64,000 nt of DNA from IMGVR_UViG_3300042261_001312:1-64000; one strand, 5' to 3'. Numbered from the stretch's first letter, positions 34,360 to 59,026 are shown. Numbers and translations are program-made. Notes: generated by a model not told the origin, from the sequence alone.

Positions 34360-34452
34360 TGGCGGAAGAAGAGGGATTCGAACCCTCGGTACGGTTTTAC
34401 CCGTACAACAGATTAGCAGTCTGCCCCAATAGTCCAACTCTGGCATCCTTCC
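34360..34452 (-). tRNA. tRNA-Ser(GCT)
   Basis: Long variable arm, G73, encoded CCA. Confidence 0.92.
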
Positions 34453-34453
34453 A

Positions 34454-35137
34454 TTATTTATTGATTTTACTTTGTCTCATTATTCTTCTTTTTTCACGTC
34501 CACTTCCTTTATTTAAAGCACCATATGTTGGTGTTAATGAATGACAATTTGGACATAAAAGTTCGAGGTTGTTTAGATTATGATTTTCAGAATTACCGTC
34601 TTTATGTTCTAGTTGTATTGGAATCAATCCAGTTATGGGATTCATCTCATTCCAACCACATTTCATGCATTTATTACCAAATTTGAAAATAAGATATTTT
34701 TTGTATGTCATTGAACTAAATGATGTGTTACCGTTATCAATCTCGTTAAATATTAAATTTTGTTTATATTTAACGTCACATTCTTTAGAACAAAATTTAT
34801 GTTGACCCTTTTTGTCTAATTTATTCCCACAATACAAGCAATTGCTTAATTTTTGAAAATTTTTTCTTTTAGGGTATTTTTTATTATTATATTCTGCAGA
34901 ACAAGACAGCGAACAAAATTTTCTATTATCTTTTAATTTTCCACTGAATAAATTTCCACAATTAATGCATGTTATCTCTTCACTAATTAATCGTTTATTT
35001 TCTGAAAATCCCAATCTATTTAATTTAACTTGAACGCTGCGAGTTGTCTTATTTAACTCATTTGAGATTTCATTAAATCTCTTTCCAATTTTATTCAATA
35101 AAATTGCTTTTTCAATTTCATCTTTTTTCCATTTCAT
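34454..35137 (-). mobile_element. HNH homing endonuclease
   Basis: Zn-finger CxxC repeats; LEHKDG...N...N...LCPNCH. Confidence 0.88.
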
Positions 35138-35197
35138 AATATTTGTTTTTATATATAAATACTATAAAATGCAAAAAAAGATTTTCGAAACGATGTG

Positions 35198-35272
35198 AGC
35201 AGATTATGGGACTCGAACCCACTAAACCTTTTGCATGGCAAGCAAATATGCAACCAGTTACACCTAATCTGC
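35198..35272 (-). tRNA. tRNA-Gly(GCC)
   Basis: TTTGC-TTGCCAT-GCAAA; U73. Confidence 0.88.
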
Positions 35273-35386
35273 ATAATACAAAGGAATTTCACCTTTGTAA
35301 TTTGTATACCCAACCCTAAACGATATACTTGGTGAACTCCCCATCTATTTCCCATCGGGTCAAAGACCATTCACGTTCCCATTTCT

Positions 35387-35593
35387 TTAAGGCATTAACC
35401 TAAAAGTTTTTAATTTACTTTTTAATTTTTCGTTATCGATCCACCATGCATAACCATCCGCTTTTTCATAAGCGTCAAATTGGGTGAGTGCTTTAACATA
35501 AAAACTTAGGATTTCACCACTCGTAAGCGTGATTTCCACCAACCAATATTTCATTGGTTGTTTCTTGCTACTTTTTGAACTTTCCATAATCAC
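35387..35593 (-). CDS. Hypothetical protein
   Basis: Open frame between tRNAs. Confidence 0.55.
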   Translation of the reverse strand: MIMESSKSSKKQPMKYWLVEITLTSGEILSFYVKALTQFDAYEKADGYAWWIDNEKLKSKLKTFRLMP

Positions 35594-35655
35594 AATTAAT
35601 CTAAGTAGCAGATTAACTATGACGTATTTACATTTCTCATAAATATAAATATTAG

Positions 35656-35727
35656 TACCCTCGAAGGGAATCGAACCCCCATCTGAACATCCGTAGTGTC
35701 CCGTTTTATCCGTTAAACTACATGGGC
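35656..35727 (-). tRNA. tRNA-Arg(ACG)
   Basis: GGACA-CTACGGA-TGTTC; one acceptor mismatch. Confidence 0.8.
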
Positions 35728-36045
35728 ATTTATTTAAATCTCTTTTTTATTGCAAGTATATTATTGTGCAATTTTTCACGTTTTTTTAATTTATCACCAA
35801 TAAATAAACAAATTGTACCGAATAATATTGAGCCAAAAAATACCAACATGGTTATTGTTAATAACCCAAATTTTGTAATGTGAAAATTATCCATAATATT
35901 GAATTTTACATAAATACATTCATTATTTACTATTGATTATAGTAACTTCACCACATGTACAAATGACAAAATCTTTATTATCAGGAACGTATATTGGTTG
36001 TTTACATTTTGGACAAGTTGCTGTTGCCATGTTAATTAATTTTTG

Positions 36046-36117
36046 TGCTCTCATTCGGACTCGAACCGAAATTTAAGATTTAGGAAATCCTCGCCCTTTC
36101 CCTTGGACTATGAAAGC
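36046..36117 (-). tRNA. tRNA-Arg(CCT)
   Basis: AGGAT-TTCCTAA-ATCTT. Confidence 0.88.
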
Positions 36118-36126
36118 ATGTATTAG

Positions 36127-36199
36127 TACACCTAGTGAGATTCGGACTCACAATCGCCACTTTAGAAGAGTGATGCATTTCCATTTATGCTACAGGTGC
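36127..36199 (-). tRNA. tRNA-Arg(TCT)
   Basis: TCACT-CTTCTAA-AGTGG. Confidence 0.88.
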
Positions 36200-36210
36200 A
36201 TTTTTTGTAA

Positions 36211-36969
36211 TTAAAAACTCTTTCCTTGTTTATATCGTTCTCTTCGTTTATGTCTGCCTTTACCAACATTCAATGCTCTATATGTAGGCGTTAATGAATG
36301 ACAATTAGGACATAATAAAATTAAATTATTTAAATTATTGTTTTCAGAATTGCCATCGATATGTTCTAGTTCAATCGGGACTTTACCACTAGTCATATTT
36401 CTTTCATCCCATCCACATTTCATGCATTTTTCACCGTGTTTATGTATTAAATATTTTTTATGATATCTGTTTTGAGTGTCATCAGTGTATTCATTCCTTT
36501 CTATTGCGTTAAATATTTGTGTTTGCTTATAATCGAAATGACACGTATGTGAACAAAACTTGTTTTTTCTATTTTTTAATATACATCCACAATTAAGACA
36601 ATACTTTATTGTTTGAACAACTTTATTCTCAAATTTTTTAGTTATATTTTGCTTAATCCTTTTGGGGTAAGCACTATTATTTTTTATTGCTGCGCACGAT
36701 TGTGAACAATATTTTCTTTTTTCATTTACTAATGATGTGAACGATTTGCCACAATTTTCACATATTACATCTTCATAATAATTTTTCTTATTTTGTTTTA
36801 GATTAAATTCAGATAATTTTTCTTTAATTGCTTTTTCTGTTCTATCTAATTTAATACCAATTTCATTAAATGTATTACCAGTATTGTGGTAATTTATTGC
36901 TTTTTTAATTTCCGAATCATCCCATTTTTTCATATTTGTAGTTTTCATATAAACACTCCAATAGAGCAA
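36211..36969 (-). mobile_element. HNH homing endonuclease
   Basis: LEHIDG...LCPNCH; paralog of 34454-35137. Confidence 0.88.
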
Positions 36970-36999
36970 AAAAAATGATTCGAATTAAAATTTATTTTG

Positions 37000-37073
37000 A
37001 GCCTGATGAGGGACTCGAACCCCCAACATCCGCATTACAAGTGCGGAACTCTACCAATTAAAGTTAATCAGGC
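37000..37073 (-). tRNA. tRNA-Thr(TGT)
   Basis: CCGCA-CTTGTAA-TGCGG. Confidence 0.9.
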
Positions 37074-37078
37074 GTTAT

Positions 37079-57200: not shown

Positions 57201-57203
57201 ATA

Positions 57204-57256
57204 ATTTATAGGCGAATTAACCGATATTATACATTTATAGGCGAATTAACCGATAT
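57204..57256. repeat. 24-bp perfect direct repeat at the HNH gene 3' end
   Basis: atttataggcgaattaaccgatat at 57204 and 57233. Confidence 0.85.
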
Positions 57257-57761
57257 AATTCTTATATTTCCTTAAATATATATTTCTTTTAGTTTCTTTT
57301 ATATTATTAATACCACCTTTATTTGTAATTTGTTGTGAATGACAATTAGGACAAATTAATCTAAGATTATCTGGCATACAATTATCTGAATTTCCATCAA
57401 TATGGTCAACTTCTAATGTTAACGGCTTGTCATTCCATTCATTTCCACATCCACATTCAACACAATTTTCGCCATGTAATTTAATCAATATTTTTCGTAA
57501 TGTGACATTCTGATATACTTTACCAGCATAAAACTTAGTCAATGTCTTATTTTCGTATTGAAAATTATTATAACATTTTATGTCACAAAATCTATTAATA
57601 TTTTTCTCTAAAATATTTCCACAATACAAACAATTTTTTATTTCTTTGTTTTTTTTCGGATAAATTTTGTTATTATATTTAGTCGCACAACTTTTATTAC
57701 AAAATTTATTATTTTGATTATTTAAATCATTACCACATTCTAAGCATTTTTTCGAATTCAT
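57246..57761 (-). mobile_element. HNH homing endonuclease
   Basis: LEVDHIDGNSDN...NLRLICPNCHSQ. Confidence 0.88.
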
Positions 57762-57828
57762 GATTATTAATTTTTTTATAAATACTCGATAATTCGAAAT
57801 ATGCAAACATTCTGAAGAAAAAATATTG

Positions 57829-57899
57829 TGGAAGATAACAGAATCGAACTGTTTCCATGTGCGTGTAGAACACAGACGCTACCATTACATCAATCTTCC
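57829..57899 (-). tRNA. tRNA-Val(TAC)
   Basis: TGTGT-TCTACAC-GCACA (C33). Confidence 0.78.
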
Positions 57900-57905
57900 T
57901 TATTG

Positions 57906-57976
57906 TATTCGGTACGGGGTTCAAACCCGTGTCTTCTGATAGAAAGTCAGACGTATTATCACTTTACCAACCGAAC
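57906..57976 (-). tRNA. tRNA-Glu(TTC)
   Basis: TCTGA-CTTTCTA-TCAGA. Confidence 0.82.
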
Positions 57977-58006
57977 ATTTTATCTCATATTGTTTATGAG
58001 ATTTGA

Positions 58007-58654
58007 TTATATTTTTCTCCCAAGAATCCAACCATCACATATATATTTATTTAATTCAACCTTCTTTATTTTTTTATTTATATTATCTTTAAAAATCCAG
58101 CAAGTTCCAAATTGTGAATTTTCACTTCCAGTAAATCTATTTTTCTTTTTTTCACTCATCTTCTTTTTGGCTTCTTCAGTATGTGTTTTTCCCGCAAATG
58201 TATTATAGTTATATTTTCCCAATTTATGGTTATTAGTTACTTGTTGCTTTAAGTTCTCTTTTGCTTTAGTTCTAAAATCACCATTATTTTTCCATCTTTC
58301 CTTACAATATATTGAAGATGCTTCTCTTATTTTTTTCAACGATTCGTCAGACAATCCACGTAATCCACCGCTTCCACCCACTTTTAAATTCATGCAATTT
58401 TCTTTAGCAATTTCGTTCAAATTTACAATTTCTTTTTCTCTGTTAATCAGTTCAGTTTTACTAGATAGAAATTCAATAATTTCAACCTTATGATTTTCCT
58501 TACCATGTTTATTTATTGAATATCTTAATCTTTTTCCCGAACCCATATAACCGTCTTTTAAATCATTGGTAGAATGCATTCCATAATAATATTTCCCATT
58601 TAATAAATTTGTTGTTTTATAAATGAAGTGATACTTTTTTTCTTTTCTTGCCAT
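58007..58654 (-). mobile_element. GIY-YIG homing endonuclease (Seg-like) with NUMOD3
   Basis: FIYKTTN..NGKYYYG.H...Y.GSG; GKTHTEEAKKK. Confidence 0.85.
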
Positions 58655-58705
58655 ATCTGTACTTTTAAATATAAATGCTTAGTAAGTACAAAAACGACCA
58701 CAGGG

Positions 58706-58778
58706 CAGAACGTGGGGGAATCGAACCCCAACCCTTGGTGTGACAGACCAATATACAACCCATTATACGACACGTCCT
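58706..58778 (-). tRNA. tRNA-Asp(GTC)
   Basis: TTGGT-CTGTCAC-ACCAA; G73. Confidence 0.85.
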
Positions 58779-58815
58779 ATTTTATTTCTCAAACATTTCA
58801 AAGAACCTCCCTAAC

Positions 58816-58852
58816 AAAAAAAAGACCCAACTCTGCACGTGTCGGGTCTTTT
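58816..58852 (-). terminator. Attenuator terminator C
   Basis: AAAAGACCCGAC-acgtgcaga-GTTGGGTCTTTT plus U-run. Confidence 0.85.
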
Positions 58853-58882
58853 GTAAAAGAAAGGAGTAATTAATATATAAAC

Positions 58883-58969
58883 TTACCCGACAGTATATAG
58901 CATATCCTCTGCATCCCATAATAGGACTGCTTCCAATGCCACCATTAATATGTCGAGTACTTTTTTCAT
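58883..58969 (-). CDS. Leader peptide C: MKKVLDILMVALEAVLLWDAEDMLYTVG
   Basis: 22 of 28 residues are D/E/V/L/A/W/M, the amino acids of the downstream tRNAs. Confidence 0.85.
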   Translation of the reverse strand: MKKVLDILMVALEAVLLWDAEDMLYTVG

Positions 58970-58999
58970 CACTTTAATTTTTACTTGTTTTTCATTAAA

Positions 59000-59026
59000 T
59001 ACGTTGCAAATATACAAAAAGTTACA
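59000..59026 (-). promoter_or_regulatory. Composite promoter of tRNA cluster C
   Basis: TGTAAC-N17-CGTA with nested TATATTTG and overlapping GTATTTA. Confidence 0.8.

Follow-up and report, generated by a model that had tools for sequence, protein, structure and literature searches.

Predicted leader-peptide attenuators in front of the tRNA arrays of a huge phage

Why would a huge bacteriophage place a tiny open reading frame and a transcription stop signal in front of each of its tRNA gene clusters? We addressed this question in a 64,000-nucleotide stretch of phage DNA (IMGVR_UViG_3300042261_001312:1-64000, hereafter the window). A previous sequence-only reading had proposed that three tRNA clusters in it are controlled by leader peptides made of the codons matching the downstream tRNAs, so that replacement tRNAs are transcribed only when ribosomes stall on codons whose tRNAs are depleted.

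We first examined whether this architecture is real. ARAGORN identified 33 tRNAs in the window, all on the minus strand, and direct reading of the upstream regions confirmed that the three clusters begin with the same four parts, namely a Bacteroidota-type promoter, a 28-39 codon ORF, an intrinsic terminator and, 9-36 nt later, the first tRNA. The ORFs start 22-38 nt after a promoter match, and the terminators are GC-rich hairpins of -9 to -18 kcal/mol followed by T-runs. Importantly, the gap between terminator and first tRNA leaves no room for another promoter in these three arrays, so that transcription must read through the terminator. However, the clusters are not contiguous, since they are interrupted by homing-endonuclease ORFs, and tRNA-Met lies 3.4 kb beyond tRNA-Trp. 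In addition, a promoter-consensus match inside array A (38078-38047) could drive part of that array independently, and some tRNAs have no leader, namely Arg at 10015 and the suppressor at 33976.

Table 1 Coordinates of the tRNA arrays and of the predicted regulatory elements in front of them.
Feature	Position	Strand	Description
Promoter A	39053..39083	-	TTTG-N19-TAnnTTTG; about 50 nt nearly identical to promoter C
Leader ORF A	38895..39014	-	39 codons
Segment 2 of attenuator A	38913..38920	-	CGGGTTTT; complementary to the terminator 5' arm
Intrinsic terminator A	38838..38871	-	12-bp stem plus T-run; 29 nt before the first tRNA
tRNA array A	34360..38808	-	Cys, Ile, Ser, Phe, Gly, Ile, Cys, Asn, Thr, Arg x3, Gly, Ser; interrupted by HNH homing-endonuclease ORFs at 36211-36969 and 34454-35137, plus small ORFs
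Promoter B	46785..46815	-	
Leader ORF B	46673..46762	-	29 codons; Lys/Tyr block KSYYGYKSYKK using AAA, AAG, TAT and TAC
Segment 2 of attenuator B	46698..46705	-	GAATCGGG; complementary to the terminator 5' arm
Intrinsic terminator B	46614..46644	-	9 nt before the first tRNA
tRNA array B	46331..46604	-	Lys(ttt), Tyr(gta), Lys(ttt)
T4 Rnl1-like RNA ligase gene	47707..48798	-	Two genes upstream of the Lys/Tyr array
Promoter C	59007..59037	-	
Leader ORF C	58883..58969	-	28 codons; one codon for each of the four Leu isoacceptors
Segment 2 of attenuator C	58885..58892	-	TGTCGGGT; complementary to the terminator 5' arm; overlaps the stop codon
Intrinsic terminator C	58816..58852	-	36 nt before the first tRNA
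tRNA array C	56184..58779	-	Asp, Glu, Val, Leu x3, Ala, Leu, Trp; interrupted by a GIY-YIG ORF (58007-58654) and an HNH ORF (57246-57806)
tRNA-Met	52626..52727	-	Followed by a strong terminator; probable end of transcription unit C
tRNA array D, in-window part	62820..63911	-	Gln x3 and His, with an ATP-grasp ORF between them
tRNA array D, remainder	contig about 64712-65400; L004 5170-5860		Two Pro tRNAs, terminator, 24-codon leader and promoter, beyond the window end

We next asked whether each leader matches its own array. In leader A, 33 of 38 residues belong to the set of its own cluster, I/S/T/F/R/N/G/C (binomial P 9e-9), in leader C 21 of 27 belong to D/E/V/L/A/W/M (P 6e-6), and in leader B 9 of 28 are Lys or Tyr (P 0.025). 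Leader B, described by the sequence-only reading as a Lys/Tyr leader, is therefore only one-third Lys/Tyr, concentrated in one block, and taken alone is only weakly significant. The codons of leaders A, B and C cover 13 of 14, 2 of 2 and 10 of 10 anticodons of their clusters, respectively. Notably, the sequence-only reading had assigned the remaining Pro/His/Gln tRNAs to a fourth cluster, but only Gln x3 and His lie inside the window. The two Pro tRNAs, the promoter, the leader and the terminator are found at contig positions about 64712-65330, and this array, whose leader could not be seen from the window, has the same layout with a PQPQQHP leader (P 1.7e-3). Its promoter-like sequence was read by eye, the gap before its first tRNA holds a ~250-nt tRNA-like RNA, and about 4% of random small ORFs match set D as well as leader D does by composition alone. 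Taken over the four arrays, which split all 20 amino acids between them, the codons cover 29 of the 30 distinct anticodons and the true leader-cluster assignment ranks 1 of 24. In LR745206.1, which has five different partitions, the true assignment ranks 1 of 120.

Importantly, related huge phages split their tRNAs differently, and their leaders follow the split. Of 88 independent array starts in related phages, 61 have such an ORF. In total we collected 61 distinct leaders in 21 sequence groups, of which 53 of 61 are individually enriched, and for all 19 testable amino acids, leaders whose array carries that tRNA contain more of that residue. Swapping arrays among group representatives never reached the observed score in 20,000 trials (P<5e-5), although many of the 61 leaders are homologous and the reduction to 21 groups includes no phylogenetic correction. 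For example, a Thr/Arg/Ile array has an IITITQITRIR leader, while the sister array has gained Leu and lost Thr/Arg, and so has its leader. Gln-only arrays likewise have QQIQQQQ leaders. These comparisons, in which leaders could have failed to track their tRNA sets, came out strongly in favour of the proposed interpretation.

We then examined the antiterminator. Each of the three window leaders contains an exact 8-nt complement to the terminator 5' arm, with codon-shuffle P values of 0.05, 0.03 and 0.004 for A, B and C, respectively. Homologues keep this pairing through compensatory changes, for example gtgtcggg/cccgacac, gatacgggtt/aacccgtatc and cgagtcttt/aaagactcg. Consistently, duplexes between a segment and its own arm average -11.5 kcal/mol against -8.4 for swapped partners (P<1e-4).

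Additionally, we performed RNA folding to explore the alternative structures. Before the 3' arm of the terminator is made, the predicted minimum-energy structure is the antiterminator (2:3) in 7 of 9 leaders, while the full-length structures of most leaders are predicted to form 1:2 plus the terminator (3:4), bearing in mind that minimum-energy folding ignores co-transcriptional kinetics. The regulatory codons lie upstream of segment 2, and masking a ribosome footprint on the cognate-codon block yields the antiterminator, whereas masking further downstream abolishes it. RNAalifold found a conserved 1:2 hairpin with three compensatory pairs inside the Lys/Tyr leader, the only type for which this hairpin is supported by covariation. 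All 9 leader regions fold more stably than dinucleotide shuffles (z -0.55 to -4.6), yet only 4 reach the 5% tail (z from -2.0 to -4.6). In several leaders, segment 2 lies 16-26 nt upstream of the stop codon, outside the footprint of a terminating ribosome, and termination under fast translation must therefore rely on 1:2 re-pairing or kinetics.

The leaders also show indirect signs of translation. The ATG and the open frame are conserved, and synonymous third-position variation occurs in the regulatory block (CGC/CGT, AAT/AAC, GGA/GGG, TGT/TGC). In contrast, segment 2 of the Lys/Tyr attenuator is conserved as nucleotides even where the reading frame across it differs.

Taken as in silico evidence only, these results make it likely that each tRNA array is a transcription unit gated by a classical four-segment, ribosome-mediated attenuator. 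In this inferred scheme, a host-type promoter starts an RNA whose first 24-39 codons are mostly codons read by the tRNAs encoded downstream. If those codons are decoded quickly, the ribosome would pass or cover segment 2, or segment 1 would re-pair with it, the terminator hairpin would form and RNA polymerase would stop before the first tRNA. If any of them is decoded slowly because its charged tRNA is scarce, the ribosome would stall on segment 1, leaving segment 2 free to pair with the terminator 5' arm, and the array would be transcribed. Because the products are the tRNAs being sensed, each unit would act as a negative-feedback loop on tRNA supply.

A more specific version of this scheme, favoured by the sequence-only reading, is inducible counter-defence, in which replacement tRNAs are switched on when host anticodon nucleases or other tRNA-targeting systems deplete particular tRNAs. 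We regard this purpose as plausible but tentative. The logic fits, since the sensor reports loss of decoding capacity and the response is a fresh supply of exactly those tRNAs, and the phage carries a complete tRNA set covering all 20 amino acids. A T4 Rnl1-like RNA ligase gene also lies near the Lys/Tyr array, and T4 Rnl1, by its established role, would repair tRNA-Lys cut by PrrC. Yet nothing in the sequence links the system to any defence, and no polynucleotide kinase/phosphatase or other repair gene was found among the neighbouring ORFs tested. The same circuit would be equally useful for a codon-usage mismatch between a 30% GC phage and its host, or for host shutoff, and the sensor cannot distinguish these from defence or from amino-acid limitation. 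Moreover, the grouping of tRNAs differs between related phages, which argues against groups tailored to one nuclease.

It is less likely that the attenuators sense amino-acid starvation, as in biosynthetic operons, rather than tRNA abundance. A leader peptide reads only the supply of charged tRNA and cannot tell why it is low, and the predicted architecture is the same as in trp, his and ilv attenuators. However, making more tRNA does not relieve a shortage of amino acid, so this signal gives no obvious benefit, and the regulated genes are the tRNAs themselves plus selfish endonucleases, with no biosynthetic or synthetase genes among them.

We consider it very unlikely that the leader RNA is untranslated and binds tRNAs directly through its codon-like triplets, as a multi-specifier, T-box-like riboswitch. 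The codon content does match the anticodons downstream, but no T-box or other Rfam leader family matched any leader at gathering score or at E<=1, only tRNA models passing and the weak hits in the leader regions being unrelated families far below their thresholds. The conserved ATG and open frame, the confinement of synonymous third-position variation to the regulatory block, and up to 30 cognate triplets in frame with no specifier-loop architecture also argue against it. Coincidence, in which ordinary terminators of upstream genes, or leaky terminators, are joined to chance ORFs, is effectively refuted, because although the window holds 238 small ORFs of 22-42 codons and promoter-consensus matches are only modestly above chance (7 observed against 4.2 expected), such matches lie between the upstream gene and the leaders of arrays A, B and C, and the composition match, the anticodon coverage, the prediction fulfilled for array D, the co-variation across 21 leader groups and the compensatory antiterminator changes cannot be explained by chance.

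Finally, we compared these elements with known systems. The multivalent leader-peptide attenuators of amino-acid operons (E. coli/Salmonella thr, ilvGMEDA, ilvBN, leu, his, trp and pheA) likewise have a promoter-proximal short ORF rich in regulatory codons, mutually exclusive 1:2, 2:3 and 3:4 pairings (of which 1:2 is supported here by covariation only for the Lys/Tyr type) and an intrinsic terminator before the regulated genes, and one leader can sense several amino acids, as in thr (Thr+Ile) and ilv (Leu+Val+Ile). In described ribosome-mediated attenuators the regulated genes encode amino-acid biosynthesis enzymes or aminoacyl-tRNA synthetases, whereas here they are tRNAs and homing endonucleases only, so that the product would act directly on the sensor. 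One leader here samples up to 8 amino acids and 13 anticodons, a set of leaders partitions the whole genetic code, and the system is carried by a phage. The pheST attenuator with its pheM leader also acts on a component of the translation apparatus, but it controls a synthetase protein for a single amino acid and no tRNA genes. T-box riboswitches share a terminator/antiterminator switch responding to the state of a specific tRNA, but they bind uncharged tRNA directly, without translation, have a conserved Stem I, specifier loop and T-box sequence, and regulate synthetase and amino-acid genes, one tRNA each. The Bacteroid-trp leader motif of Rfam, to which our leaders show no match, sits upstream of trp biosynthesis genes and indicates that leader-peptide attenuation operates in Bacteroidota, the inferred host phylum. 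Arrays of tandem tRNA genes interspersed with homing endonucleases, as seen here, also occur in T4, T5, vibriophages, mycobacteriophages and huge phages, and to our knowledge, and in the literature searched, none has been reported to be gated by codon-matched leader peptides. An unrelated GC-rich phage array in our own sample has no leader.

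Contig IMGVR_UViG_3300042261_001312 of IMG/VR is 327,676 bp long; the window is its first 64 kb, so that window and contig coordinates coincide, and GC is about 30%. Megablast of 8 kb of the window, as well as blastn of leader B, against GenBank phages found no close relative, and relatives had to be reached through the ribonucleotide reductase protein. This protein is 65% identical to that of the 635-kb uncultured phage LR745206.1 and 57% identical to that of the 462-kb LR756500.1, and IMG/VR holds about 80 related contigs of up to 675 kb, so this is a huge phage. Scanning IMG/VR with the shared promoter 17-mer returned about 90 loci, almost all of them chance hits, of which only 4 belonged to this phage or a relative. 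Similarly, scanning with the LR745206 pre-ATG motif returned 6 loci, none of which carried a tRNA in the pipeline control run. The promoters of the window phage match TTTG / TAnnTTTG, which appears to be the Bacteroidota consensus.

We next examined the tRNA arrays themselves. ARAGORN finds 33 tRNAs, all on the minus strand, and Rfam confirms most of them. Among the unusual ones, Cys with anticodon ACA and the Tyr tRNA are called by ARAGORN but fall below the Rfam tRNA threshold, while Asn (86 nt) and Gln (85 nt) are unusually long. Direct reading of the three upstream regions showed the same order of parts in each: a promoter match, 22-38 nt later an ATG-initiated ORF of 39, 29 or 28 codons (leaders A, B and C, respectively), 25-35 nt later a GC-rich hairpin with a T-run (-9 to -12 kcal/mol for the core stems), and the first tRNA only 29, 9 or 36 nt after the T-run. 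No second promoter fits in that gap, so tRNA transcription must read through the terminator. A promoter-consensus match does lie inside array A, in the 49-nt spacer between tRNA-Gly(tcc) and tRNA-Ile(tat), but it could be chance (4 expected per window) or an internal promoter. Importantly, each ORF contains an exact 8-nt complement of the terminator 5' arm.

Homing-endonuclease ORFs (HNH, GIY-YIG, LAGLIDADG, DUF559) are inserted within and beside the tRNA arrays and would be co-transcribed with the arrays under attenuator control. Two other tRNAs have no leader. The first is a lone tRNA-Arg(tct), immediately upstream of which a ~90-codon ORF is flanked by an exact direct repeat that looks like a duplicated promoter or insertion scar. 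The second is an amber-suppressor tRNA with its own promoter-like element. Since a suppressor tRNA could point to stop-codon recoding, we searched for affected genes, but no ORF in the window is split by an in-frame TAG into two long pieces and TAG ends only 2 of 48 long ORFs. Any recoding must therefore concern genes elsewhere in the genome. The coordinates of these and further features are collected below.

Coordinates of features in the window and in related loci (L-numbers denote individual loci of this phage and of related phages)
Feature	Location	Strand
Lone tRNA-Arg(tct)	window 10015-10087	
Exact 31-nt direct repeat	window 10094-10124 and 10414-10444	-
Amber-suppressor tRNA (anticodon CTA)	window 33976-34047	-
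Homing-endonuclease ORFs	window 34454-35137, 36211-36969, 55406-56119, 57246-57806, 58007-58654	-
Homing-endonuclease ORF	window 61298-62218	+
Homing-endonuclease ORF	window 45580-46239	-
Unusual tRNAs (Cys, Tyr, Asn, Gln)	window 37790-37861, 46435-46520, 37694-37779, 62895-62979	-
Promoter-consensus match inside array A	window 38047-38078	-
T4 Rnl1-like RNA ligase gene	window 47707-48798	-
~250-nt RNA with tRNA-like ends, beyond the window	L004 5345-5600 = contig about 64887-65142	-
Serial internal attenuators of LR745206.1 and LR756502.1	L001 17305-17355; L011 49630-49704; L209 21071-21124	+
Conserved element of LR745206.1 leaders (example)	L001 16320-16372	
Insert between Lys/Tyr terminator and first tRNA in relatives	L194 7650-7846; L127 7960-8136; similar in L119, L171, L188, L137	

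To test whether the leaders match their own arrays, we compared their residues with the amino-acid composition of long ORFs in the window. Leader A has 33 of 38 residues from its own array's set against 15.8 expected (binomial P 9e-9), leader B has 9 of 28 against 4.4 (P 0.025), and leader C has 21 of 27 against 9.3 (P 6e-6). Every off-diagonal leader/array combination is at or below expectation, and the true assignment is the best of 24. Among 238 small ORFs in the window, only the leaders themselves reach the scores of A and C. At codon level, the leaders contain a cognate codon for 13/14, 2/2 and 10/10 of the distinct anticodons, with leader C having one codon for each of the four Leu isoacceptors. 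However, codon-level (isoacceptor) specificity beyond the amino-acid level has little discriminating power and is not strict; for example, AGY Ser codons occur in an LR745206 leader whose array has only tRNA-Ser(tga).

The sequence-only reading had inferred a fourth Pro/His/Gln cluster whose start lies outside the window. We thus examined the DNA beyond the window end, and the prediction was fulfilled. This region shows a promoter-like sequence, a 24-codon ORF whose centre is PQPQQHP, and a terminator, with GAATGGGG in the ORF complementary to the terminator arm CCCCATTC (codon-shuffle P 0.001). After these come a ~250-nt unknown RNA, two Pro tRNAs, His and three Gln tRNAs. Together, the four units cover all 20 amino acids without overlap. 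The unknown RNA sits between the terminator and the first tRNA-Pro and has tRNA-like ends (acceptor stem and T arm) with a ~190-nt internal insertion. It is 89% conserved in contig L198 and has no Rfam match, and gaps of similar length (about 320 nt) precede the Lys arrays in loci L118 and L154.

The same reading would be refuted by leaders in relatives not tracking their tRNA sets. We therefore examined LR745206.1 almost completely (positions 1-628,000 of 634,780). Its tRNAs are grouped differently, and each group has a matching leader. The true assignment of the five main leaders ranks 1 of 120.

tRNA groups of LR745206.1 and the leaders that precede them
tRNA group	Leader
His/Phe/Trp/Lys	block HKNFSKSHKWF
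Arg/Ser	SSSRSSS
Glu/Tyr	YESYYEE
Ile/Gly/Met/Ala	rich in I, G and A
Asn/Arg/Leu/Val/Ile/Thr/Met	29 of 37 residues from that set
Pro/Asp	PVNPQPQDQDP
Gln	QQIQQQQ

LR756502.1 repeats the Pro/Asp and Gln leaders. In the related contig L160 the 'A' group is split: a Thr/Arg/Arg/Ile array follows an IITITQITRIR leader, whereas a Phe/Ile/Ser/Gly/Asn/Leu/Cys array follows a leader that has gained Leu (5 residues) and has almost no Thr or Arg. Serial internal attenuators were also noticed inside arrays of LR745206.1 and LR756502.1, where a Gln-only leader starts 33 nt after a tRNA-Pro with no room for a promoter and an Arg/Ser leader has its own promoter-like motif. Sub-groups within one operon can therefore be gated separately.

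To extend this comparison, we ran an automated search on all related loci for an ORF of 14-55 codons ending within 75 nt of a hairpin plus T-run, within 330 nt of a tRNA. The search yielded 61 distinct leaders in 21 sequence groups, of which 53 are individually enriched. For each of the 19 testable amino acids, the residue is more frequent in leaders whose array carries that tRNA, for example Pro 8.1% against 0.2%, Gln 19% against 1.6%, and Tyr 13.5% against 2.8%. Shuffling arrays among the 21 group representatives never reached the observed score in 20,000 trials. Of 88 array starts with no same-strand tRNA within 4 kb upstream, 61 have a leader, and most of the rest are locus-edge artefacts, single tRNAs or pipeline misses. 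In contrast, an unrelated GC-rich phage with a 14-tRNA array has no leader. The feature therefore belongs to this clade and is not general to phage tRNA arrays.

We then explored the RNA switch by structure prediction. Before the terminator 3' arm is transcribed, the minimum-energy structure pairs segment 2 with the terminator 5' arm in 7 of 9 leaders, whereas the complete transcript is predicted to fold as an intra-ORF hairpin (1:2) plus the terminator (3:4). When a 28-nt ribosome footprint was masked at every codon, a ribosome anywhere on the cognate-codon block left 6-10 antiterminator pairs, while a ribosome further downstream removed them; the cognate block ends where the antiterminator is lost. 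In the MAFFT alignment of A-type leaders, segment 2 is mis-registered by 1 nt in five sequences, and a fixed-column count of antiterminator pairs was thus abandoned in favour of per-sequence duplex and swap tests. Homologous leaders keep the pairing through compensatory changes, and own segment-arm duplexes are 3 kcal/mol more stable than swapped ones (P<1e-4). RNAalifold on nine Lys/Tyr leaders recovers the terminator and a long 1:2 hairpin with three compensatory pairs, one of which is AAG...CTT exchanged for AAA...TTT. Moreover, the regulatory block shows synonymous third-position variation, while segment 2 (GAATCGGG) is conserved as nucleotides even though it is read as ...ESG... in this phage and ...RIG... 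in relatives. So the 5' half behaves as codons and the 3' half as RNA structure.

The simplest reading is classical attenuation, in which slow decoding of the test codons leads to a stall on segment 1, then 2:3 pairing, then readthrough and more of exactly those tRNAs, forming a negative feedback loop. Translation of the leaders, coupling to host RNA polymerase and the trigger are inferred in this reading. A weak point is geometry: in several leaders segment 2 is 16-26 nt upstream of the stop codon, outside a terminating ribosome's footprint, and termination under fast translation must then rely on 1:2 re-pairing or timing. In structure, the arrangement agrees with leader-peptide attenuators, although less certainly for the 1:2 hairpin, and it departs from them in the nature of the regulated genes. 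No known leader, T-box or riboswitch model of Rfam matches, either at gathering score or at E<=1, and full-text literature searches combining phage or huge-phage tRNA terms with leader peptide, attenuation or attenuator found nothing relevant. We therefore regard the mechanism as known and its target, together with its closed-loop, multiplexed logic, as new. tRNA genes are generally treated as growth-rate-controlled or constitutive, and phage tRNA arrays as passive cargo, yet here the ribosome itself appears to meter tRNA demand codon by codon and to feed that back onto tRNA transcription. If confirmed, this is the first attenuator class whose output is the molecule it senses, and it explains how huge phages manage 30 or more tRNA genes. 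It also gives a direct, testable handle on why phages carry tRNAs, be it codon mismatch, host shutoff or anti-defence, and the leaders become a readable annotation of which tRNAs a phage treats as one functional group. The design is compact and protein-free, and could be reused as a synthetic sensor of decoding capacity.

A further possibility, which we consider attractive but only tentative, is that these huge phages carry a complete, self-regulating decoding supply. A handful of codon-matched attenuator regulons would together monitor the decoding speed of all 20 amino acids, each switching on exactly the phage tRNAs that are running short, and would make the phage robust to host tRNA-cleaving defences and to its own shutoff of the host. 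It would be an inducible, sensor-coupled counter-defence that needs no protein regulator. An Rnl1-like RNA ligase gene lies two genes upstream of the Lys/Tyr array, and the T4 enzyme probably repairs cleaved tRNA-Lys. However, a search for tRNA-repair genes near the arrays found only this ligase, with no kinase/phosphatase partner among the ORFs tested, and the groupings vary among relatives. An anti-defence purpose is plausible but only inferred.

In LR745206.1, a conserved element lies between promoter and leader ATG (AAAAGGGA...CTTTTTAATATATAAGAAATAATG), which may be a 5' hairpin plus an initiation region and is absent from the window phage. In addition, relatives carry a 130-165-nt insert with repeated GCATAAAAACGC motifs between the Lys/Tyr terminator and the first tRNA.
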